Source: Podarcis melisellensis (taxonomy: Eukaryota). Taken from it: 64,000 nt of DNA. Below are positions 5,089 through 63,849 of the stretch, one piece after another. Both the position numbers and the translations under genes were made by a program. The stretch is from the NCBI GenBank assembly GCA_964234715.1, contig OZ174280.1; one strand, 5' to 3'. Position 1 is the stretch's first letter. Each line of letters opens with the position of its first letter. The notes under the pieces were generated by a model. It was not told where the DNA came from. It worked only from the letters and a program-made list of their open reading frames with translations, and did no database searches.

Positions 5089-5640
5089 GCAATGAGAGAA
5101 CTGCCCCTGCTTTCCACTAACCTACTAAAGAAGCCTTGCTTATTCTTGCAGAGAGAGAGGGGGGGGGAGGAAGGAAGGAAGGAAGCTCTCTTTCCTTATT
5201 TATCCTGCAATCACTGGCTTCCTCCTGCTCTTCCCAATGATCTCCACTAGAGAAAAAAGGGTATCTGCAAGAAAAAAAACAAGGCCAGTGTAATAGCAAG
5301 TAGCATAGAAAGAACCCAGTTCGCTTGCTTGTTGCCAAAAACCTGCAGCAAGGAAAGAGCCTGCAGCAAGGAAAGAGCAGAAGCACTATGGCCACAGGTA
5401 CCTGCCATGGGTTTCAGAACTGGTAACCACTATAAGCACTTGGGGACTTCTTTACAAAAGTTGAGTGGGGAGGGTAACATGTGAATCAATCAACAGTGCT
5501 GCCCTTTTCTTGAAATAAAATTTGTCAACTGTCTGATGTGCTGAACCAATCAGTATTGTTCACCACCATGATATTCAGCACAAGGCTAGAAAGCTGGAAG
5601 GAATCCTGAAAACAACAGGATATAATATGGAATACTTCTA

Positions 5641-5882
5641 CAGTGGTACCTCAGGTTAAGAATTTAATTCGTTCTGGAGGTCTGTTCTTAACCTGAAACT
5701 GTTCTTAACCTGAAGCACCACTTTAGCTAATGGGGCCTCCTGCTGCCACCGCGACGCTGGAGCACGATTTCTGTTCTCATCCTGAAGCGAAGTTCTTAAC
5801 CCAAGGTACTATTTCTGGGTTAGCGGAGTCTGTAACCTGAAGCGTATGTAACCTGAAATGTATGTAAACAGAGGTACCACTG
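5641..5882 (+). mobile_element. 242-bp Tc1/mariner (pogo/Tigger-like) MITE, copy 1
   Basis: TIRs CAGTGGTACCTC...GAGGTACCACTG, TA on both sides, internal TAACCTGAA repeats; five homologous copies in the window. Confidence 0.92.
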
Positions 5883-6327
5883 TAATCGTAGCAGCAAAGC
5901 CCTGAGATTCCATGTGGGAGTAGAAAATAATATATCCCAGGAATCACTTCTCTCCCACTTAACTACCAGAAGATGAACAATGTCATTTAAATATTTTAAG
6001 ATTTTTAACAATTAAGCTTTAAAGTTATTCTATCTGCTGTCTGCTAGTGACATGGAAGGTGTTCAGAGCTGGACCTTGGGCACTTTGCATTGCCGCTTAT
6101 GTTGTGTCATGATCTTTTAACCCAGTTAAAGGCTATTCTTATTCTCCCTTTGGGAAGCCCACTTAGCCTTGATGACTTGCTCCTACTTGATTTCACACTT
6201 CTATCTAACACTCACTCTTCAAGAACTGGGTCCTTGAGCTGCTTCTTCGTCATTTTTTTCCTAACAAAAAAATCATTTCACAGCTTGCACATTGTTTGTA
6301 TTTAAAACTAAATCAATTTACTTGAGA

Positions 6328-7748: not shown

Positions 7749-7945
7749 TGTTGTGAATTTGGGCAGGGCTAGGCTGTATGCCAGAGACCCTTTCCTGGAT
7801 CCAGCAGGGATTCCATTGCTGGAATAGCCAGGCCAGCTCCTTTGTGAACTAATGGTCCCTTAAGTATGGGCCATTAGGGTAACAAAGGAAGTGGCTTTGA
7901 ATCAGATAGCAAATGGGTGGGAACAACAAGGGTCAGGGCTGAAGT

Positions 7946-8033
<88 letters not shown>

Positions 8034-8305
8034 GGCTAGAAGCAGGCAGCAGCTGGAGAGACAGAGCCATGCTTGATTTTTGTTTGAATCCAAGGCTGTG
8101 GCTATGGGAGAAGCAAGACCTTCTGAATTGTTTATGCTTTGAGCCCCTCCACTATAGGCTCAGGTTGTATATATGTGTAAATAAACCATATATAATAAAG
8201 ACACCACAGCCTCTGCTGTCCTTCATTCCAAGGAAAACAAACCCTGGGTAAGAACCTAGAACTCCAGAATTTCTCACTGCTTGGAGATTGGAGTGACATG
8301 CAACA
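7749..8305 (+). mobile_element. Solo LTR (Gypsy-like)
   Basis: Termini TGTTG...CAACA, flanks ATAC/ATAT (4-bp TSD, 3/4 match), AATAAA at 8180-8185, no internal coding sequence. Confidence 0.7.
7944..8030. repeat. Compound microsatellite (GT)n(AG)n
   Basis: Read directly; lies inside the solo LTR. Confidence 0.98.
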
Positions 8306-16341: not shown

Positions 16342-16397
16342 AAAGCTAGACAGTTTTCCTGTCAGATTATGGCATGTTCTTTTGCTTTTACAAAATA

Positions 16398-16639
16398 CAG
16401 TGGTATCTCTGGTTATGAACTTAATTTGTTCCGGAGGTCTGTTGTTAACCTGAAACCATTCTTAACCTGAGGTACCACTTTAGCTAATGGGGCTTCCCGC
16501 TGCCTCTGCACCGCTGCCACACGATTTCTGTTCTCATCCTGAGGTAAAGTTCTTAACCCGAGGTACTACTTCCGGGTTAGCGGAGTCTGTAACCTGAAGC
16601 GTTTGTAACCCAAAGCATTTGTAACCCAAGGTACCACTG
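16398..16639 (+). mobile_element. 242-bp Tc1/mariner MITE, copy 2
   Basis: CAGTGGTATCTC...AGGTACCACTG, TA on both sides, colinear with copy 1. Confidence 0.92.
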
Positions 16640-17321
16640 TAATACCAGCGACTTATTATATCTCTTATTGTGCGGTGTCACCGTGTGTTGATTTGCAGTC
16701 ACAAGTCACAGCATTTGTAACATGTGTGTGTCCATGCATTTCACATCACTGGTGAAACCATCACTCCCACATAGTGCCATCCACTATGGCAGTTCACGTA
16801 CAAATCAACAACAGACGTTTCCTGGATTAGAAGGAGCAACTACATGATCCAATTCAATCAGTGTTGTCCTCATCTGTGGCCAATTCCAAACCATCTCTAC
16901 TTTGCATGGAGATTTTTACAAGCCCCCCCCCCCCCAGCAGGCTGGCATTTTTGTTGTTACAGTAAAATAGCTGGCAATTACTGCAATCTTAATCAGGCAT
17001 TTTATGATCCTCCATCAAGTTGTATCAAATGAAATATTCTCCCTCCTTGTTTTTCTGGATGTTGCAGCTGCTGATCTTCCTCTTCAGAGAGTAATATGAT
17101 CACCAGTAGCCTCTGGAAGAGACAGCAAAGGAAGTGGGGTGAACTCTTTGAAAGCCAAGCCCATTGAAAATTCAGAAATAATGGGAACTAGAGACTCGCA
17201 AGAAAGACAAGCAAGGGAGGCAAATCAGAAATGCAGCACTTGGCTTGCATTAAGGTCGACTCTCTGACAAATGTCTTGCTCTTTGTGTCTCAGCAAAGAC
17301 TAGGCTTTGGGGATGATTCCT

Positions 17322-19864: not shown

Positions 19865-20553
19865 TAGGGCTGGGAGAAACTGGTTTCTCTGAGTTTCTCG
19901 TTTTACAAACTTAAGTTCAGTCCTCTGCACTTCCATGTATGTTTGCGAATTTGTAAAAGGGCTAAAATCTGCATGAAAATTCAACAGCATTTTAGTGCAA
20001 ATGCCTCCTAATGTATACAGTGGTACCTCGCTTTACATACGCTTCAGGTTACATGTGCTTCAGGTTATATACGCTTCAGGTTACAGACGCCGCTAACCCA
20101 GAAATATTACCTCAGGCTAAGAACTTTGCTTCAGGATGAGAACAGAAATCATGCTTTGGCAGTGCGGTGGCAGCAGGAGGCCCCATTAGCTAAAGTGGTG
20201 CTTCAGGTTAAGAACAGTTTCAGGTTAAGAACAGACCTCCGGAAGAAATTTAGTTCTTAACCTGAGGTACCACTGTACACATTTTAACTAATATACACAT
20301 TTTTGCAAAACAATTTCCCCGAAGATAATGCATGTTTGTACTGTATTTTCACTAACAAATGCATTTCTATGGGCACTTTACCCCAATTTATATATTTTTG
20401 AGCCTATAACTTGGCAGGGGAATGGCATTTGCAAAATTCAGAGTACCGTGAATTTCAAATGATGTATTTCACATCACATATTGTTTTAGAAAGTGTAGAT
20501 TAGGTTGATTCACCTTTAAATGTGAAGTGAATCAAATTTCTCCCCAATCCCTA
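19865..20553 (+). mobile_element. AT-rich hAT element interrupted by a Tc1/mariner MITE
   Basis: TAGGGCTGGGAGAA...TCTCCCCAATCCCTA termini; colinear with 27535-27968 once 20018-20275 is removed. Confidence 0.8.
20018..20275 (-). mobile_element. Tc1/mariner MITE, copy 3 (258 bp, one extra 16-bp unit)
   Basis: Same TIRs and TA flanks; three GCTTCAGGTTA units where other copies have two. Confidence 0.92.
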
Positions 20554-23003: not shown

Positions 23004-23322
23004 TGTGCTGATCGGGGAAATAGTTGTATGTGCATTGTATTTACTGTAAACCATCTGGGGGCATGGTTTCATATCCTAATAACTAGTGTTGTACCAAAGT
23101 TCTGGAAAGTTTGATTTTAAAATAAAAAAGTGGGCAAAATATCCCTTAGTAGTGTTCTAGCTGGAGGTACAACTAGGTTTTTGTGCCTGGGTGCTCCAAC
23201 TCTAGGAATTTAGTGTGGAATTGCCATGCTTTCTTCAAGGAACCTTTTGTAGAACATCCACATGATTCTATCATCCAGTCATCATCCAGTATTTTCCCTG
23301 TGCTACTTCTACCTTTCTTATA

Positions 23323-23564
23323 CAGTGGTACCTCGGGTTACATACGCTTCAGGTTACATATGCTTCAGGTTACAGACTCTACTAACCCAGAAATAGTACC
23401 TTGAGTTAAGAACTTTGCTTCAGCATGAGAACAGAAATTGTGCAGCGACGGTGTGGCAGCAGCAGGAGGCCCCATTAGCTAAAGTGGTGCTTCAGGTTAT
23501 GAACAGTTTCAGGTTAAGAACGGACCTCCAGAACAAATTAAGTACTTAACCCGAGGTACCACTG
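23323..23564 (-). mobile_element. 242-bp Tc1/mariner MITE, copy 4
   Basis: CAGTGGTACCTCGGGTTA...TAACCCGAGGTACCACTG perfect 18-bp TIR; flanks TA / AA. Confidence 0.92.
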
Positions 23565-25083
23565 AACCAAAGAAAGTCTGAAAAACAGTAGAGTTATCTC
23601 TGCAGGTATAGATGCCCATAGCACTACCATATTTTTAAAGGGATGAGGTTTTGATGAGGGTAGTGACATATCAGGAATGTAAATCTCGCAGTTCAGCACA
23701 CATTCATTATAACAGTTTTGGTGGATAGCATTCTATGATTCTTAAAAATAATAATCAATTTTTCATTGTTATTGAAACATTTTTTTCTGGCTCTAATTGT
23801 ACAGAGTACTACAGCACCGTAACTCTAGTGTGGCATAGTGTTATAGCACTGTAACACAATAGTAATATGATAACACTATGCTTTCATTTCATTGAACAAA
23901 ACAACCAGAAAGTGTTTTAGTGATAATTAAGCCCTGATATACTGCTTCTTCGGTGACATTTTTAGGCCTTCTTCCCTCTTTGTTTTGTTATCCCAGCCTA
24001 TCAGGGAATTACGTGGTGAACACGATTACATTATGCCACTACATATTGATCAGTTTTAGCTACGTGATTAACTCATCAAGAGTAAACAAAGCCCCCAGAC
24101 TGCCTTCACTTTGAATAGTGATGAAGGGAATGTGAATCTGTTGTCCAGGCAACACAACGAGACTTTTTAGTACAACAATTCAACTCTAGCGATGCATCTG
24201 TGTATGACCTGTTGGGACATGATGTGTATGGAAATGTATATTCTTATTCACAATAAGTGACTGGATGGGGGAAGACAACATCAGCCAGCTGCCACCCTTC
24301 TCCCCAGCACCTGCCCCCTTTGTAAAGTTCTGGACCCTTTTGCAAAGAAGTGCAATTAATCACCTCCAAGGGGGTGCATTTCGCAGGGAAGCAAAAATGT
24401 TCATGAAACATGTTCCCTCTTCCAGCTCAGCACTACTGATAGCACACTGATTGATTCACACTGCTGACTTCCTCCGTGGGCTTGCAAAGAAACGTACGTG
24501 TGTGATGGTGGTGTAAAAGACTGCCTAAATTTCAGCTGCTACAGTAAATAATATCCCTGTGCTGCAAACACAACCATGTGGGGTGTGAACCTGTGCAACA
24601 CCTGAAAATGCATCCAAGATGAATTTTGCCATTTGTTTTCTGAGCAGCTGAATTGTGTGTATCATATGAGATAGCTCTGTGAAAACTGCTGGTGCTGCTG
24701 CTTTAACAGCCTTTACTGTCAGAATTTGCATTCTGAAGCAAAATAAATAATAGCAATGCTAAAGAGGAAATGGGAGTGTTTTGTTTGTTGGATTTTCTAA
24801 ATTTCTGAAGCACCTCTAAACCTGTAGTAAAAGTAAAGCTATTCAGTAAAAGGGCAGTGGGAATACTGTACAAGATTAGGTTTGTGTGGTACAATGTTAA
24901 AATCTGATGCTCCACTGGGCTGCAGATATTTCTTCCCAGTTTGGAATTTTCATTCCTCTTAGCCTTTGACTTGTGGAGTCCAAGAACTTGCCTGCAACAA
25001 AGTTGTTCCAACAAACCTGTTTTCCAAATATATATATTCTCTTGCATTGCAGAGGAATTTGGCTAGATGAGTCTTTGGGTCCC

Positions 25084-30811: not shown

Positions 30812-31237
30812 CTGTAGAGAATAAGAAAGAGACCTATCCTTCACCATTTTACAGACAGATATAGGGACACATTTGGATACCACTAGGGCCCATTGCCCAG
30901 CCCCCTCTGTTGTTCTACATTGCTGGAGGCTTGACTCTGCCTTTTGTTTATTGTATTCCTTCACTCTACAAGTGCCTATTCTTTACCAGTTTAAAAGCTG
31001 GAAGGGTGTGTGTTTGGTTGGTTAAAGATTATCTTTTTTTGTATTGGAACTCCTTTTATGTATACATAAAGTGCTGGTTCCCTTTATTGCCAGGATAATA
31101 AAAGGCAATCTGCTCATTGCTCAAATAACACTGGTCAGAAATGAAAAACAACTGGAAATAAAAGTTTAAGGATGAAGTTTGGCTCCAGCCCATAATGATT
31201 AGGTTCCAGATTTAACCCTATAGTGGTCAGACTAGTA

Positions 31238-31373
31238 CAGGCATAGGCAAACTCGGCCCTCCAGATGTTTTGGGACTACAACTCCCACCATCCCTAGCTA
31301 ACAGAACCAGTGGTCAGGGATGATGGGAGTTGTAGTCCCAAAACATCTAGAAGGCCGAGTTTACCTATGCCTG
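31238..31373. mobile_element. 136-bp near-perfect palindromic hAT MITE
   Basis: CAGGCATAGGCAAACTCGGCC...GGCCGAGTTTACCTATGCCTG with ~58-bp arms; perfect 8-bp TSD GACTAGTA (31230-31237, 31374-31381). Confidence 0.93.
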
Positions 31374-31551
31374 GACTAGTACATATATATTGGGAAATTT
31401 TAATTGTCCTGCAGCTGTAGTATTTTATCAACAGTTCAAAATGTTTCCATTAGCAGTTGGAATGTGTTAATTGGAGCAGGCTGTGTTCTTCATAGGAATG
31501 CTAGGCCTACTCAGGGTAGACCCACTGAAATAATCATGACTAATTTAATAG

Positions 31552-32352
31552 CTGCATGTGTAAGAGGAGGGTAGCACCTCTGGTGGGGGACACGCCATTC
31601 TCTTTCTGTGGCAGTTTGTCCACTTCTGGTCTCCATCCTGCATCTCTCACCTGCAGTACCTAGAAGCTGTTACCACGTGACATCAGCCACACCCCATGAA
31701 TGGCTTCGACTGGCCAGTTAAACCAAGTGAAAGGAGCCAATGGTTCTCAAATCCTCAGTGAGTTAGGGACTTCCCATGCATGCGAAGATAGGCTCTGGTA
31801 GATTGAGCGGACACCAACAGTGGGTCCAATGGTCAAGGAGGCAGTTTCTCCATGTGATGTAAAGGGAAGTGAGAGACTGATGGGGTTTGTCAACCTGGGA
31901 AGGTAGCCCCTGTTGGAGAAGCAAAACTCTTATCCTGAACTTCTCTTGCCTTGCAGCTATAGTCCATCATGAAAAAGGCTTCAGGAGTACACCCTGAGGA
32001 GAAACCCATACCCACTGCCTTGCAGGATCTCTCCAGGAAAAGAAAAGGCTAAGGAGTAAACCCTACACAAATCCAGAGTGGAGTCTCTATGATGGTTGTA
32101 TGATGTCTTGTATACCTTCTCCTTACAACTCCTGCAGCCAAACTGGTGCCAAACATATTGTTCTTCTTTCCTTTGGACCACATCAGCAAGGCTAAGAGGG
32201 AGGTCTTGTCATCTGGGCAGCCCAGGACCTCCATGCACACTGCCCAGGCTTGTGCCCCAGGGAGGTAACTCCAGTGCTGCTAATGCAGTGGTTTACCCCC
32301 CCCCCCCGAGGTGCACTCCATTGTCTCTTGAGACAGATGGATGCCAACAAAC
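31552..32352 (+). mobile_element. Non-autonomous RTE-type retroelement (5' UTR plus short 3' tail, no ORF)
   Basis: First ~280 bp are colinear with 43516-43802; ends in CCATTGTCTCTTGAGACAGATGGATGCCAACAA (stem-loop plus CAA repeats, as in RTE tails); family assigned from recognition, not from a search. Confidence 0.65.
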
Positions 32353-32620
32353 TTGAGTAGGACTTAGCTGAATACAATCCTTAGTATCATATTGCTATTA
32401 GAGAGGATTCATCATAGCACTAAAGATATAGTTCTGTTGGGCAAAGAAAATCTCCCCTCACCTCCCCCTGCATGCTAGTCCATCTGGAGCAGATTGGCAG
32501 GGGGCAGAAGGAAGAGATGGGGGAAAGCTCTGTTGTACTGGCTTCTGCTAATAAAATGTGACAGCTGAATCCATCCCTCTGCTTCCCAATCCACCTAGGG
32601 TGGTCATGAGTCTTACTTTA

Positions 32621-32644
32621 CAACAACAACAACAACAACAACAA

Positions 32645-32684
<40 letters not shown>
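32621..32684. repeat. Compound (CAA)n(CA)n microsatellite
   Basis: Read directly. Confidence 0.97.
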
Positions 32685-32692
<8 letters not shown>

Positions 32693-34021
32693 TCTGTTGG
32701 AAGACATCCTTTATTTGAAGATCTGTGCTGTCCAAGTCTGGTTTAATGAAGAAGAAGCAGAAGAAAGTTTGTCGCTGGACAGCAGACCAGATAGACCCAT
32801 GTCTCACTATGATTGCATGCATTGTATTATTGTTTAAATTATAATAAACATTTCTAGATTTGCATCCATGCATGTAAATTAGCATATGCATCTTATGCAA
32901 ATTCCTGTCTCTGTGGGGTTTTTTTTTGGGGGGGTGAAGCATAACCATGCTTGAGAAAGGGGAAACAACAACACAATCTTCTGAGAAAGCAAACAGCAAT
33001 CCAAATTCTGTTTCATTATGAAAAATGGGAGCACCACAAGACTTTGTTCTAGGCCCTGTTTTTGAAGCTGTCTCTTATACTCTCTGCATTGACATCACTG
33101 CTGAGCAGCTAGAACAGTTGTCCCCATACTGTGTTGGCTGTATGCTTGGAGGTGTCAGAGCACAGTAGATGTTTGTGAAAAGCCAGTAATGGCAAACTGC
33201 CTTGGGCCCCTAAATTCCTCAAAAGATGGCCTATTCCATTATGTTCCATCAATCAAAAGCCCCTTTGCACCAATGCCTGGTGTTTGTCCACAGCATCTAG
33301 CGACAGTAATTATAGCCATAATAACATCCCCAGATAATAGGTAGGTGCCATATAGTGGATAAAGGCAGTGATCATTGCCTGCAGTATAATGATAGAGGTT
33401 GGGAACTCCATGTTCCCTTCAACAATGTCTAGTTTGGCCCTGATAGACAAGGAAAGTGTGGAATGGAGCACTATTAGACAGGAGGATGTGATCCTAATCG
33501 GGCAGATGCCCATAATGTGTATATGGATGTTACAACTGACTGAGGAAATGAATATTCTCTTTGACAAGCATTGCAAAAATAAGCAGAGACATCTTTGGAA
33601 AAACAGGTTCCCATGTCTTTGTTTTTGGTTTTTTTAGAAAATCTAAAAACCCCACTTGTGTTTTTGTTCTGCAAAGTATTTTCGGCGCTTGATTTCCAGC
33701 ACAGTAGTTTTATGGAAAACTTAAAAGTTTGCATCAAGCATTTCTCATATTGCAGGGGAAATGAACATTCTGTTCCATTCAAAAGCTTTCTTTTTTATAT
33801 AAAAAAGGGGGAATCATGTTTTCTTCTTGACAAAAGCATTCCAACCACTGTCTTTTTAAATTCTCTGTACAAAGGCAGCTAGAGAAAACTCTATCTCCAC
33901 TTAATTTCATAGTCATTGTGGCTGTGCACTGAGCTCTGGCACATTTATTTTCAAAATACCGCTTGAAGAGCCAGGGTAGTGGCTTTTTTCAAAGGCAAAG
34001 GGAATGGGCTCCATATTTTTC

Positions 34022-35088: not shown

Positions 35089-35378
35089 CATTAAGCAAAG
35101 AAGTGCCGCTGCCATTGGCACCAATTTTGGCAAGATCACGGCATTTGGCACAAGGTCTGACCCCAAATAGGCATGACCCTGCCTAAAATCTGCACAGATG
35201 TTGGTGCTGTTTCTCTGCAGACAGCAGATGGGGCATGGCGCATGGCGGTGGCAAAACAGGTGATGGCGGCAGGAACAACTAGGTGGTGGCAGGAGGACAA
35301 AGCCACCAGGACAAAGTGGCACATCTCGTTTCATCTCAAGTGGTGAAATGGGACTCACTGCCCCTGCTGATGGCACTA

Positions 35379-35620
35379 CAGTGGTACCTCGGGTTACGTA
35401 CGCTTCAGGTTACATACGCTTCAGGTTACAGACTCTGCTAACCCAGAAATAGTGCTTCAGGTTAAGAACTTTGCTTCCGGATAAGAACAGAAATCAAGCT
35501 CCGGCGGCACGGCAGCAGCAGGAGGCCCCATTAGCTAAAGTGGTGCCTCAGGTTAAGAACAGTTTCAGGTTAAAAACGGACCTGCGGAACAAATTAAGTA
35601 CTTAACCTGAGGTACCACTG
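35379..35620 (-). mobile_element. 242-bp Tc1/mariner MITE, copy 5
   Basis: Same TIRs, TA on both sides, many CpGs retained. Confidence 0.92.
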
Positions 35621-35714
35621 TACCATCAAGATCTCCCCAGCAGCTCTCAGGTCACAAGCTGGTTAGTATATACAGTGGCTGGCTCTCCAGTAACTTGGTC
35701 CCCACCTATACTGT

Positions 35715-38848: not shown

Positions 38849-39961
38849 TTGATGCCATAATAAAATGTGTTGGTCTTTCTTGGTCTTTGTTGTTTTTGCT
38901 GCCACAGTCCAGCATGGCCACCCTTCTGGCAATAGCTCAAAAATATATAATGTGTGGATTGGCCTATGGTCCTGGGATCCAAAGCGTCAGACGGCTCATT
39001 CTTGGAAGGAACATCAGCTTCTTTGTGAACGACAGCAGATTTGTTTTAAAGGTCTCAGAACCTTAAAGTTTTCCTAATTGAAAAAAAGTCCTACGGTGCC
39101 CTCATCCCTTGCCCTTTGCACATTGGATACAACAGAGCAGATGCAGGCATTACCTTACACCAGGAAATTAAAATCAGATAAGAGGCCAGGTCCCTACTCG
39201 CTGCCCTGTGGAGTTTGATCTTTCACCAAGAATTCATATTAGAGAGGAGATGATGAGATCTCGTGTTATTGCTTGTAACAAAGCACCGCAAAGGTCATGA
39301 GCTGTCTAATACAGAGAAGTTGATCTGTATGTGCCTCTGAGACACTCCTAGATTGACTTACTGCAATGCCTTGTTTGTCAAGGTATCTGGAAATTTAGCA
39401 GTATTTGCCAACCTGTTTGGAATACAAAAGACTCAATGGATTTGACAAACTCTTAAGGAATTCATCATCTGTTCTTTTCCTGTTTTCATTAACAATCAGT
39501 CCCCTTTGCATGTAAATCCCACTTGGGTGGTTTGAACATAAGCAGTAAGACTTTGAACAGAAGCCTTCACAAGCCGAAGTGTCCTGTTCAAGCACAGTAG
39601 GAAGAAGTTTTTGTTGTGCTGCAATCCTCCCACCCACCCAACCCACCAAAAAGCCACACTAGTCTCAGCAGAAATTTTCAACTTTCGCTAGATTGTTTTG
39701 ACCATGATCATTAAGAAATTTCAAGACATTCATGGGACATTTCTCTGTTTTTGTGATAGTTTAGAACAGTTATCAATAAAAGAGAATCCAAGTGGAAAAC
39801 TATTTTAGGGAATTTATTTTATTTATTTATTTGTTTGTTTGTTTGTTTGTTTGTTGTTTCTTTTTTTAAAAAAACTTCATATGAAACCAATGTCTCAGAA
39901 AGTACAGTTGCAGGGTTTTAATATGCAGAGATTTATGTTTTATTCTAATTCATAAGGTGAG

Positions 39962-40096
39962 CCTTCACCAAACTAGCACCCTCTAGATATGTTGAACTAC
40001 AACTCCCACCATCCCTGACCATTTGCCATGCTGGCTATAGCTGATAGGAGTTGGAGTTCAACAAGATATGGATAACATCAAGTTGGGAAAGGCTTC
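39962..40096. mobile_element. Degenerate palindromic MITE
   Basis: GTTGAACTACAACTCCCACCA...TGATAGGAGTTGGAGTTCAAC inverted arms; GCCTT...AAGGC ends. Confidence 0.6.
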
Positions 40097-41500: not shown

Positions 41501-43515
41501 GTATGTCACCTCACGCAATATAGTACAGAAATTCTTCTTCTTGCCATTTCCGCAAAAGAGCACCTGGGACACAAATGTAAGACAATGTTACTGACATATT
41601 CAAGATGCAACTGCCTCAAATGTTATCTCAGTCTTTCCATTTAACTGTCTAGTAACATGCCCTTAATTATCTGTCAAGTCCGGCTCCACTTTAGGCAGGC
41701 AGCACCTGTCAAATCCATCTCTGCAATATGAATCGTGCCAACATGTCAGGGTGTCTGATCGCACCTCTTGACAGTTGCTGAAGGCACAAAGATCAAACCT
41801 TCAGTTCAAGCAACAGGGAAATATCACAGTTGCAGGTTTCACAGGGGCTAAATGAACTCAGCCTTTGGCAAGCCTTCTGCTCTCCATGCACTGGATTGCA
41901 CCAGACATTACAGAGTGATCTGGGTTAGCAAACATCTCTCTTCTGAATGCCAACAATTTTTTCAGGCAATGGATGTAATGGGGAATAACCAGAAAATATG
42001 AGGGACAATGGTCCAGATTTGGTTTTTTTTAGTTGTTTTTAATGTTCCTAAAATTATAAGCTTGAAGAATTTTGAAGATCAGGGACTGGCATAAGCCATT
42101 TTGCTGCCTGAAGTGAAGGACAAGATGGTGCCCCCTCTGTTGCATGTACAAAAGCAGACTGGACTGGAAGATGAATCTTATTTCAACACTGGCAATGGGC
42201 AAGTTCACCTGAGGGCAGCAGACTCACATCGGTGATGCAGTGCAGACCTTGTTGTACACATAGCTTTATCCTCCAGCATCTGCTAGTCCTGAAACGTTTG
42301 TAGGAACTGCTCTTTCCTGTTGCTATTTGTCTGGACTGGTTATTCTGAACAAATGATTTCTTAACAAGTTTTTGACGTTCTTTTATGCACATAATTGAAG
42401 AGTGATAAAAAGCTGAGTTTTCCCCACTACATGAATACACATTATACAGTAATATACAGAATAAAGAAGCAAATCCTTTGCGGCAGTTGGTAGTGTGAGT
42501 ATGGAACCAGGGGACCATTCTCAAGTTCTCTTAACAACCTTCACTACTGTGTCACAGTCAGGAGTGTGGAAAGACTATTTCCCTACCATTTTAATCCTTC
42601 CTTATTGGTGAAGCGTGGCTTCCAATCCACTTTAGTGGCTTTTAACAGGCAGTTGTAATTATTCCCAACTCACACAAACTGCAAAAGTGTGATTTTGTGT
42701 AAATGATGCATAGATTGGAATGGATTTCCAATTGAACCATGCTTGAGGAAATGGAGGGGAGGAGAGGTGTGTTGGTATGAAATATGTAGGCTTTTCAACC
42801 CTGTTCTGTTATACATCCCTTAATTTCTTTATATTTACTATTAGGAAGTCAACGTTGTAAATTTTTCACAATAACGTGGCTGCGCCCAGCAGTTCAGTGG
42901 TGCTCTTAAGGGATTCTGCCCTTAGGAATGCTGATCAACAGAAATCCTCTGTCAATTTGGAATGCAGTATGATCAATGTGCTGATGAAACCCACCTCTAT
43001 TTCCCCTTGCCCTACTCCCATCAATTCCATGATTTAGTCCGTGTAGAAAGACTGAACTGAAATCTCTAGCCATTTTTCTGCCCCATTGGCAGATGATGAG
43101 ATTGAGGACGTATTTTGATTATTTGAAGCAAGGTGTATATGTGGCTGAATTTACCCATAGTGGTAGCAGAATTCTTCTTAAAGTTGTCAACCACCATTTT
43201 CCCTTACAGGTTCCCACATAACACATCCATGTCAGTGCATAACATCATTCTGGATAAAGGGGAGGGGGCATTTTCCAACATCTTCCACTAAGGGAAGCAA
43301 CACCATTGTGAAACTGGTGTTGGTGAACAAAGGTGAGCTAGGTTTCAGGATCCATCGTCCCCAAACCCACCACCATCCATTTTTGAGTGGAAAATTAACT
43401 ATAAAATGTTTAGCTCTGTAATCCCTGAATTAATGCCTGAAGACTGTTGTAGGCTGTGTTAAGATAACAAGTTGAAGCTTACTAGAAAGAAGATAGGGAT
43501 TATCATGTGGGTCTT

Positions 43516-43699
43516 GGGGTGTATAAGGCATTAGGGGGGAGATAGTACCTCTAGTGGGGGACACATCATGCTCCCTCTGGGATAGTTTGTCCACCTTTGG
43601 TCCCCACATTGCACTCTGCTCTCACCTTTGGCTCCTAGAAGCTGTCAGCATGCAACAGCGGCCACATCCCAGGAACGGCTTCTACTGGCCAGGTGAGAG
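43516..43699 (+). ncRNA. Putative decayed HDV-like self-cleaving ribozyme
   Basis: P1 GGGGTGT/ACATCCC, P2 CTCTCACCT/AGGTGAGAG, P3 GGC/GCC, L3 starting TCC, GG after P1'; J4/2 deleted in this copy. Confidence 0.55.
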
Positions 43700-43802
43700 T
43701 CGCCAATAGATTTCAAACCCTCAGTGAGTTAGGGTCTTACCCTGCATGCAAAGACAGGCTCTGTCAGATTGTGCAGACAAGACCAATAGTGAATCCACAG
43801 GG
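43516..43802 (+). mobile_element. RTE-type 5' UTR fragment (second copy)
   Basis: Colinear with 31552-31830 (ACCTCT.GTGGGGGACAC, AGTTTGTCCAC, CTCTCACCT, CCTAGAAGCTGT, CCTCAGTGAGTTAGGG). Confidence 0.75.
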
Positions 43803-44037
43803 ACAGAACACCCCAATGTAGATCTCCCCCCCCCATTCCTGATTTAGCTCTTCACTCACTCCTTCTTCTCCAGTGAGGAGGGAGGTGCCACTCAGTGGTT
43901 TGCCTCAGGTCCCAAAATTTATTGGGCCAGCCCTGGAGAGGATATTACTTCCAGTGCAAGTTTTTCTGCATGTGTTCCTTGTTTGCTTGCAGACCCAATT
44001 CAAAGTAGTGCTGATTACCTTTAAAAGCATTTCAGTG

Positions 44038-44163
44038 CAGACAGAGAACCTATGACCCTTCAGATTCCAGCTTTCATCAATCCCAGCCACCATGGCCAAT
44101 AGGCAGGGATGACAGAAGCTGGAGTCCAACAACATCTGGAGGGCCACAGGTTCTCCATTTCTG
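44038..44163. mobile_element. Degenerate palindromic hAT MITE
   Basis: GAGAACCTATGACCCTTCAGAT...ATCTGGAGGGCCACAGGTTCTC inverted arms. Confidence 0.6.
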
Positions 44164-44362
44164 CCTTACATGCTTGGAATCCATACCTTCAAGACTACAT
44201 CCTCCAGAGTCAGGATTGTAAGGGCACAGGATTGCACCTCCTCCATTGTGATCCCCACATTTTGGGAAGCATTGCCTCCTTATTGACCTTTTAGTAGCTA
44301 GTGAAAATAAAATTTTGGAAAGCATTTTATACTGATTAATAGCATATGGTGCTCATTCTTCT

Positions 44363-44366
<4 letters not shown>

Positions 44367-44394
<28 letters not shown>
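44367..44394. repeat. (CT)n microsatellite
   Basis: Read directly. Confidence 0.95.
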
Positions 44395-44397
<3 letters not shown>

Positions 44398-45689
44398 CTT
44401 GTACTTTTAAATTGTTCAACAGATATTATAATGGTTATTTTTGTGCCTTTTAAAATGTACCTTGTATTTTTATGGTTGCGTCTTACAACTATGGTTCAGA
44501 TTATTGTATTGTGTTTCATTGTTATCTCATGCATGTTGCACACTACTTTAAGTGCCACTTCCTCGCTGTGAACTGCAACTAAATTTGACAAAATAAACAC
44601 ATAAATGTGTGTCTGTGTGTCTCCTGCCTTCCAGCTCATCCTTCCTTGGGAATTCCAAAAATCCCCAGCAGCAATGTCTCAGAAGAGTTTGTGATGTCTT
44701 CTCTAATGTGGTGCTTTCCAGATGTTAGGGGATACAACAGTGACCATTAGCTATGCCGGCTGCAGCTGATAGGAGTTGGAATTGAACAACATCTGGAGGA
44801 TACTAAGTAATGGAATGCTGGTTTGGGGGATATAACAAATTATATATTCATTCCCTGAAAGTGCATTTGCTGACAAACCTTTTCAAACAGACAAAATTAA
44901 GACCATTCCAGTGTCTTCATTACTGTATTTAATTAAGCAGATGTTTTCCTTAGTTTTGACATCTGGAGATTCCCATGTGATTTACATTTCTACTATGAAA
45001 TTGTATACAGATGGTAAAAAAACAACCCTGAATATACCCTCCCACCTCTCAGGCAATTGGTGATATTTCCTCTATATAAACTAAGCTCTTAATAACTGCT
45101 CATTCTACCCTCCGCCTTTACTGTTAACTTCCAATTTTTCCTTGCATGCTTCCAAATGAGTTTTGTAATGAATTCATAAATGTAAATAAGAATCCTTACA
45201 ATGAAAGATTAGGCAATTGGAAAATGATTTAATTTTTCATCATTCTGGATTATAGAGTGCAGATATTTATATCAATTGAATGTGCACTTTTAAAGCAAAT
45301 TTTGCAAGTTGGGTGTTTTTCTTAATCTGCTCCTTCTAGTCTTCTGAATACGTGATGAGAGACTCAGTCATAAATGTAAAGTGCATGTGTTCTGTTTTGT
45401 ATGTACCAAATGATTCATCTTTGATTAGCCATTCTATCACTAATTCAAGAGTTAATTAATACAGGATATATTAAATCATGTCATATCAAGTTTTGCACAG
45501 TAACCCATAACTCAGAAATTATTATTCACTTTTTCAGCTAATAGCCTCATAATGAAGTTTTATACCAACTAATGAACAGGCCTTATACTGTCAGAGCCGT
45601 AGTGCTATTTAAAGAAAATGCTGCTTATAAGGCTGTAACCCTTGTAATGGTTTGTAACCAGCTAGATTACTGGCCTGGGTTTCATTTAG

Positions 45690-54004: not shown

Positions 54005-54180
54005 CAGGCATGGCCAAACTTGGCCCTCCAGCTGTTTTGGGACTACAATTCCCATCATCCCATTTCCCATCTGTTTTGGGACTACAATTCCCATCAACAG
54101 GACCACTGGTCCTAAAATAGCTAGGGATGGTGGGAGTTGTAGTCCCAAAACAGCTGGAGGGCCACGTTTGGCCATGCCTG
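54005..54180. mobile_element. Palindromic hAT MITE with internal duplication
   Basis: CAGGCATGGCCAAAC...GTTTGGCCATGCCTG TIRs; CTGTTTTGGGACTACAATTCCCATCA present twice in the left arm; no TSD. Confidence 0.85.
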
Positions 54181-62699: not shown

Positions 62700-63200
62700 G
62701 GTTTCCACAGATTCAAGCCCACAATACTGAATGCACAGCTTCTGGTGGATGTGGGGCCACGCATCTGAGCCATGGGGGACCACGTACAGAGAATCCTCTC
62801 AAGATCTCAGTGATAAGGTGTAGATATAAGGCAGTCCTTAAAGCTGGCATAGGCAAACTCGGCCCTCCAGATGTTTTGACTAGAATTCGCATCATCCCTG
62901 TCCACTGGTCCTGTTAGCTAGGAATGATGGGGGTTGTAGTCCCAAAACATCTGCAGGGCCAGTTTGCCTATACCTGCCTTAAAGTACCCTGGACCCAAGT
63001 TGTTAAAGGCCTTGTAAATCCATACAAGAACACTGAACTTGGCCTAGTGGCTTTGAAGTACTATGTGCTGGCAATAGTCTGTCCCCATCAACAATCTAGC
63101 CACAGCATTTTGCACTAGCTGGTGCTTCTGGACCAGGACCACATAAAGCACACTGCAATAATCAAATTGCGGTTACCAGCGCATGAATCACTGTGGCCAG
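62700..63200 (-). mobile_element. L2-group LINE fragment interrupted by a hAT MITE
   Basis: Minus strand VLVWIYKAFNNLGPGYFKDC reads continuously across the MITE insertion site. Confidence 0.7.
62844..62976. mobile_element. Palindromic hAT MITE
   Basis: CTGGCATAGGCAAACT...AGTTTGCCTATACCTG; perfect 8-bp TSD CCTTAAAG (62836-62843, 62977-62984). Confidence 0.9.
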
Positions 63201-63261
63201 CAGTTGGCTTTGTAGCTCCCCTCAACCTTCTGCAATCCAGGATTTTTGCCACAATCCAGTA

Positions 63262-63525
63262 CAGTGGTACCCCTGGTTAAGAACTTAATTCGTTTCGAAG
63301 GTCCGTTCGTAACCTGAAACTGTTCTTAACCTGAGGTACCACATTAGCTAATGGGGCCTCCCGCTGCTGCCGCGCCACCGCTGCACGATTTCTGTTCTCA
63401 TCCTGAGGTAAAGTTCTTAACCCCAGGTACAGCTTCCGGAGGTACAACTTCTGAGGTACAACTTAGCGGAGTCTGTAACCTGAAGTGTTTGTAACTCGAA
63501 GCGCTTGTAATCCAAGATACCACTG
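63262..63525 (+). mobile_element. Tc1/mariner MITE, copy 6 (264 bp, internal triplication)
   Basis: Same TIR family, TA on both sides; AGGTACA(A/G)CTT occurs three times at 63425-63463. Confidence 0.92.
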
Positions 63526-63849
63526 TAATTATGCTCATCATGTTCTTTGACACAGTACAAGGTATCAGGACACACATCTGCCATGGATATAGTACAGCAG
63601 CTTTCTGTGGCAAAGTATCTTTTATCAGTCTTACTTTTGTTGCCAACTTCAGGCCTGAACTGTAACTTGCATGAAATGTTTTTGAGGGCCATCCGCTGCC
63701 ATTTATTCCACTATGCTCTTTCCTAGGCCTGCACAACTTACAACGAAGCCAAATGCAGGATCGCAAGGGCCTGCTTGATCCTGAGTCAGACCATAAGTCC
63801 ATGTAGCTTGTATTGTCAAACCTAAATGTCAGATTCCGTATGAGGTTTC

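Follow-up and report, generated by a model that had tools for sequence, protein, structure and literature searches.

A probable relic of an HDV-like ribozyme variant at the 5' boundary of an abundant non-coding repeat family in Podarcis melisellensis

Results

The 5' part of the 43516-43935 copy can be arranged as a nested double pseudoknot

The window analysed here, a 64,000-nucleotide stretch of Podarcis melisellensis DNA (GCA_964234715.1, contig OZ174280.1) that includes 152 N, contains at 43516-43935 a copy of a dispersed non-coding repeat, together with one other copy of the same family, here called copy A, at 31561-31828. A first-pass annotation, made from the letters alone, had read the 5' part of the 43516-43935 copy as an HDV-like self-cleaving ribozyme fold heading an RTE-type element. 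The features that bear on this reading are as follows.

43516-43522, plus strand: P1 5' strand, GGGGTGT, checked pair by pair; its first base, G43516, is the 5' boundary of the family
43523-43618, plus strand: J1/2, 96 nt, a long imperfect hairpin in the MFE fold and a P1.2-like peripheral domain
43619-43628, plus strand: P2 5' strand, 9 bp in this copy; with G at 43628, the family majority reaches 10 bp
43630-43632, plus strand: P3 5' strand, GGC, pairing with 43661-43663 at three of three positions; P3' abuts P1'
43633-43660, plus strand: L3, 28 nt, beginning with TCC (the P1.1 partners) and containing its own hairpin at 43641-43659
43661-43670, plus strand: P3' (GCC) followed immediately by P1' (ACATCCC; ACACCCC in the family majority)
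43672-43673, plus strand: P1.1 GG, one base past P1'
43676-43690, plus strand: P4, a short hairpin with 3 bp and a U.G in this copy and CGGCU/GGCCG in the family majority
43690-43691, plus strand: junction of a 9-nt deletion removing J4/2; the family majority has the 9-nt GGCTAAACC there
43691-43699, plus strand: P2 3' strand, AGGTGAGAG, checked pair by pair
43700-43935, plus strand: remainder of the non-coding element, delimited by contig depth, loose ends and alignment with copy A
31558-31733, plus strand: ribozyme region of copy A, decayed and 5'-truncated (P1 4/7, P2 8/10, P3 2/3, L3 hairpin 7/8)

The strands follow one another in the order P1-J1/2-P2-P3-L3-P3'-P1'-P1.1-P4-J4/2-P2', which is that of the HDV nested double pseudoknot. 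A pair-by-pair script, run on the sequence, bore out the helices that the first-pass annotation had named: P1 (43516-43522 with 43664-43670) pairs at seven of seven positions with a single G.U, G43519-T43667, and P2 (43619-43627 with 43691-43699) is Watson-Crick at nine of nine, while the GGC/GCC pairing of P3 is complete and its 3' strand runs directly into P1'. The proposed P1.1 also held up, in that L3 starts with TCC, the GG lies one nucleotide after P1', and C43634 and C43635 can pair with G43673 and G43672, respectively. The first pair of P1, G43516-C43670, is Watson-Crick both here and in the family majority, in place of the G1.U37 wobble of the known core.

The loop L3 departs from the expected architecture, in that the short loop of 7-8 nt is replaced in both copies by a longer one with an internal hairpin, which in the 43516-43935 copy has a length of 28 nt; the complete P3 and the CC/GG pairing are nonetheless present around it. 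The hairpin is formed by 43641-43645 with 43655-43659 and retains 5 of 8 bp in this copy, compared with 7 of 8 in copy A, and its better preservation in copy A indicates that the hairpin belongs to the family and did not arise as damage in the 43516-43935 copy.

The J1/2 hairpin is kept in the MFE structure, and the whole region folds with z = -2.1. It is also retained in a two-copy consensus fold, in which a run of two neighbouring pairs differs on either side between the copies (AU/UA here, GC/CG in copy A); of the helices compared in the two decayed copies, this one alone has two such changes. These paired changes are weak evidence that the J1/2 helix was under selection in active lineages. 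A P1.2 helix within J1/2 activates large HDV-like ribozymes, for example drz-Agam-2-1 (PMC4908430), and the J1/2 of silkmoth R2 ribozymes carries inserts of 216-498 nt (PMC3774820), so that a 96-nt J1/2 poses no problem for the assignment.

The repeat family is very abundant and begins at the first base of P1

To place this copy within its family, Logan contigs were taken from four runs, each labelled as a different organism, and aligned to 43300-44100 at a likeness of at least 80%, and the depth and majority letters given below were read from these contigs, as distinct from a curated copy set or an assembled consensus. Between 3,759 and 4,213 contigs matched per run, from which it follows that the family is very abundant. 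Contig depth is that of a single copy through 43515 and climbs from the bin 43516-43542 in the four runs. Loose ends at 43543 have 27 upstream letters that are identical in 4/4 runs and start with GGGGTGT, and the three letters preceding the conserved 27 vary among the runs (TTT, TTT, AAT and CAT). The single-copy depth up to 43515 and the run-variable preceding letters together place the start of the conserved family sequence at the first G of P1. This start had been set beforehand as a test of the ribozyme reading, and the contig majority begins there in all four runs, placing the fold at the 5' terminus of the element as the first-pass annotation had it. That a 5' boundary should coincide with P1 is the exact pattern that would be expected from cleavage 5' of P1 plus reverse transcription, and the cleavage site is accordingly predicted directly 5' of G43516. 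By our estimate the prior for the sole 7-mer that complements ACACCCC turning up as the first 7 nt of the family would be about 6e-5.

The majority letters also improve the pairings of the 43516-43935 copy. Position 43667 is C instead of T in most contigs, which makes P1 Watson-Crick at seven of seven positions in the family majority, and the majority G in place of T at 43628 extends P2 to 10 bp by pairing with C43690; at 43698 the majority has G for A, and the pair is retained as U.G. The family majority of 43516-43542 contains a tandem GGGGTGT AT GGGGTGT, either unit of which could pair with P1', and the second repeat has decayed to AAGGCAT in the 43516-43935 copy.

Copy A is about 73-74% identical to 43532-43797. 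It is without the first ~12 nt of the family, and for this reason homology within the window begins only after P1: the idea that P1 lies where homology begins therefore stands at the level of the family, whose boundary in the contigs is 43516, and does not stand for the copies in the window, whose homology starts at 43532-43543. Downstream of the ribozyme region, 43700-43797 is common to copy A, 43798-43893 is less abundant, and 43894-43935 is highly repeated; the 3' boundary of the family lies near 43935, where the flanks are random (agreement 0.33). When the 3' parts of the two copies were compared, no significant relation was found.

The 43516-43935 insertion is old, as two other organisms have contigs that run from the upstream flank into the element (run X2, record 25; run X13, record 9). 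In these same two runs there are 11 extra bases at 43508-43510, just upstream of the element. In a run from another organism, X17, 43377 is linked within one contig to 43667 through 5 other letters, a joining that corresponds to a 289-nt deletion of the flank plus the 5' 150 nt of the element (43378-43666). None of the RNA runs contains the 43516-43935 stretch.

The family majority has a J4/2 at the position where this copy has a deletion

The short GGC/GCC P4 proposed earlier is present as 3 bp plus a U.G, with 43677-43680 facing 43687-43690 (G43677-C43679 with G43688-C43690, plus the U.G). There are zero nucleotides between P4 and P2' in the 43516-43935 copy, and J4/2 and its catalytic C are thus absent, as had been noticed from the letters; measured against both the family majority and copy A, the loss is a 9-nt gap. 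In the contigs whose alignment breaks off at 43666, 43675 or 43713, the majority reads CGGCT, a 6-nt loop, GGCCG, GCTAAAC and CAGGTGAGGG. These letters correspond to a P4 of 4-5 bp and a GCUAA-type (CNRA) J4/2, after which P2' follows directly. A GCTAA-type J4/2 had been anticipated for the consensus, and GCTAAAC was recovered from the contig majority at exactly the predicted gap. The alignment with copy A has the identical 9-nt gap, and the insert in copy A holds GTTAAAC, so that its J4/2 at 31717-31723 has T at the position of the catalytic C. P4 closes with a C-G pair in the majority and with U-A in copy A, and both bases lie within CpG sites.

From the 9-nt deletion of J4/2 it follows that the 43516-43935 copy should be inactive, and it is probably a dead relic of an HDV-like ribozyme variant. 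Its worth lies in that its own defects predicted features of the family which were later found to be correct.

Chance occurrence of the layout and searches for relatives

How often such a layout arises by chance was estimated with a descriptor allowing a J1/2 of up to 120 nt, an L3 of 6-30 nt beginning with TCC, and a GG 0 or 1 nt past P1'. This descriptor, whose limits had been relaxed afterwards so that the long L3 would fit, matched only the site at 43516 on both strands of the window. In shuffled sequence it gave 1.2 matches per window with a P2 of at least 6 bp, 0.12 with 8 bp and 0.05 with at least 9 bp, and a P4 plus a CNRA J4/2 was additionally present in 1.9% of the loose chance matches, so that the full layout is expected by chance at 0.05 x 0.019, or roughly 1e-3 per window. 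By these shuffle rates the pairings of one copy alone are unusual to a mild degree only, and scanning a whole genome would turn up many such cases by chance. A reading of the locus as chance pairings, which was at first rated as very probable, was dropped given the family-level contig evidence.

The Rfam HDV-type models (HDV, CPEB3, drz-Agam and related models) gave no match in the whole window at the gathering score, and no match for either copy even at E values up to 10. A SNORD16 match at 43720-43802, with E 0.41 and 20.5 bits where the gathering score is 45, is attributed to chance. Searches of viral contigs with two 16-mers returned chance matches only, and metagenome contigs had no match to a 22-base P2-P3-L3 pattern. 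With a structured L3/P3'/GG/J4/2 pattern there were only two matches, both in prokaryote-like DNA and ascribed to chance, and two patterns were without a match in genome contigs. Across the four collection scans there were no relatives outside this species group that could lend the core covariation support. Within the library of papers searched, there was no report of HDV-like ribozymes in lizards, or of one heading a dispersed, high-copy, non-coding squamate family, and a search for the motif strings of the family returned unrelated primer matches only.

Element class and other repeats in the window

The assignment to an RTE-type element is not borne out by the window, which has no RT or EN coding and in which no 3' tail was seen to be shared with known RTE elements. 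The 20 longest open segments of the window contain no RT or EN domains (Pfam), stop-free segments reach at most 169 aa anywhere in it, and beside the two copies there are no ORFs of at least 60 aa with endonuclease or RTE-type RT content. A weak PhoLip_ATPase_C match at 32616-33074 is a chance match, to which a PDB search lent no support. The 43516-43935 copy ends near 43935 without a microsatellite-like tail, no tRNA-like SINE head was found, and inspection by eye around 43516 and 43935 revealed no convincing terminal inverted repeats or target-site duplications.

A further arrangement is seen at 32599-32690, where GGTGGTCATGAGTC, TTACTTTA and a (CAA)n follow one another (32599-32645) and the (CAA)n runs into (CA)n, the whole lying ~0.9 kb from the shared core of copy A on its downstream side. 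The GGTC..GAGTC motif near this downstream (CAA)n is one that we take to resemble Bov-B 3' ends, and the stretch as a whole looks like a reptile Bov-B-type 3' end, the sole hint of an RTE-type element in the window. Reptile Bov-B LINEs have (CAA)n 3' ends (PMC13295347).

Several other repeats share the window. A short palindromic MITE-like family is found at 31231-31380 and 54005-54180, and also at 62844-62978, 39959-40079 and 44098-44147, with arms of 57-65 nt that are 92-95% complementary and centred on GGGACTACAACTCCCA. Another repeat, of ~250 nt and with tandem GTAACCTGAAGCG-like units at one end, occurs six times in both orientations at 83-89% identity (5639-5896, 16396-16647, 20032-20295, 23321-23569, 35365-35625 and 63259-63527). 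Finally, the window has long microsatellites of the (GT)n(GA)n and (CT)n kinds, at 7935-8034 and 44352-44399.

Discussion

Processing of retrotransposon 5' ends by HDV-like ribozymes is an established finding for insects, nematodes and trypanosomes as well as for R2 elements. In our proposed explanation, 43516-43935 would be an insertion, now dead, of a non-LTR retroelement family that is non-coding and very abundant. In the source RNA of this family, an HDV-like nested double pseudoknot with a structured J1/2 and a GCUAA-type J4/2 would take up the first ~190 nt. A master element situated within a transcribed region would be copied as part of a longer host RNA, the J1/2 hairpin would bring P1 and P2 together, and the C of J4/2 would then catalyse a cut 5' of P1's first G. 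Released in this way, the RNA would carry a 5'-OH, and both the RNA and each new DNA copy would begin exactly at that G. The RT of a partner LINE may recognise the 3' end of the RNA and copy it into new sites. The 43516-43935 copy, having lost the 9 nt with J4/2 and the catalytic C, and with its L3 hairpin decayed, would be unable to cleave.

Judged from the sequence of the family, its 5' domain probably is, or was, a true HDV-like ribozyme. A more specific possibility, which we advance only tentatively, is that the intact members are an active, or recently active, self-cleaving HDV-like subclass that tolerates an 8-bp L3 hairpin and a G-C first P1 pair, and that among the thousands of copies some could cut the host transcripts in which they lie. 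Because the length of L3, the absence of the G.U wobble and the lack of a match to the Rfam models all depart from the known class, and this copy departs from it in J4/2 as well, the family is not yet a proven HDV-like member.

Two other explanations have to be weighed against the ribozyme reading. The locus could be an ordinary interspersed repeat in which complementarity arose by chance and an HDV-like layout was picked out by a permissive pattern search over many windows, and the following speaks for this view: the loose descriptor matches about 1.2 times per shuffled window, even the strict one would give tens of matches by chance in a genome of gigabase size, hundreds of windows were read in the scan, Rfam has no match and the core no covariation, and L3 is longer than the known range. 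What chance does not predict is that the family majority should have a GCTAA J4/2 at the exact gap, that it should repair P1, and that its boundary should fall on the first base of P1, and we regard this explanation as unlikely.

It is also conceivable that the 5' domain is a real and selected RNA structure that does not cleave, serving instead in translation, stability or recognition by a partner RT, and either descended from the HDV-like fold or converging on it. L3 is a part of the catalytic core that is strongly constrained in known members (PMC3774820; bioRxiv 10.1101/2022.09.22.508989), the hairpin within it would be incompatible with catalysis, a G-C pair stands in place of the G1.U37 wobble, and an IRES-like action has also been proposed for HDV-like ribozymes (PMC6765202). 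However, cleavage would give the family just such a uniform 5' start, at the first base of P1, which would otherwise need another explanation, and the majority retains a J4/2 of the catalytic CNRA type, which leads us to consider a non-cleaving structure rather improbable. The ribozyme reading is preferred. If intact copies do cleave, the L3 hairpin would come as a real surprise in structural terms: L3 would be seen to accept a helical insertion, and search descriptors for this ribozyme class would have to be widened. Cleavage by intact copies would also account for the defined 5' end of a promoter-less SINE-like element, and would imply thousands of potential RNA cleavage sites in reptile transcriptomes.

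Comparison with known HDV-like ribozymes places the family within the general plan of the class and sets it apart by its 28-nt helical L3, by one base between P1' and the GG, and by a P4 of only 4-5 bp. Nearest to it among known systems are the RTE and baggins 5' ribozymes (PMC6765202) and R2 with its non-coding SIDEs (PMC3414825), which agree with it in layout and in proposed role. With the ribozymes of HDV and CPEB3 this family shares the helix order, a 3-bp P3, a CC/GG P1.1 and, in the family majority, the catalytic C in J4/2. The HDV and CPEB3 ribozymes have an L3 of 7-8 nt and a conserved G1.U37 wobble (bioRxiv 10.1101/2022.09.22.508989), and in contrast with the lizard family their J1/2 is likewise short and they have no retroelement context.

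The R2 ribozymes, and the R2 SIDEs (short internally deleted non-autonomous R2 elements), are similar in combining a 5' HDV-like ribozyme with, in the SIDEs, a non-coding derivative (PMC3774820, PMC3414825), as well as in needing the 3' end for reverse transcription and in tolerating very long J1/2 inserts. In R2, 15 nt of P1.1, P3 and L3 are highly conserved, and changes of the conserved C and G of L3 accompany loss of activity (PMC3774820). R2 inserts only in 28S rDNA, whereas the copies of the lizard family, thousands in number, are dispersed, and its L3 is expanded.

HDV-like ribozymes are also found at the head of promoter-less RTE and baggins elements (PMC6765202), and these 5' ribozymes include the mosquito drz-Agam-2 (Ruminski et al. 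2011, as reported in PMC6765202 and PMC3774820; PMC4908430). The lizard family differs from them in its 28-nt L3 with a hairpin, its G-C first P1 pair, its non-coding nature and its squamate host, and it does not match the Rfam drz-Agam models. It resembles them in its helix order, in having P1 at the first base of the element, in its P1.2-like J1/2, in the CNRA J4/2 of the family majority, and in being a promoter-less element that would be freed from a longer transcript.
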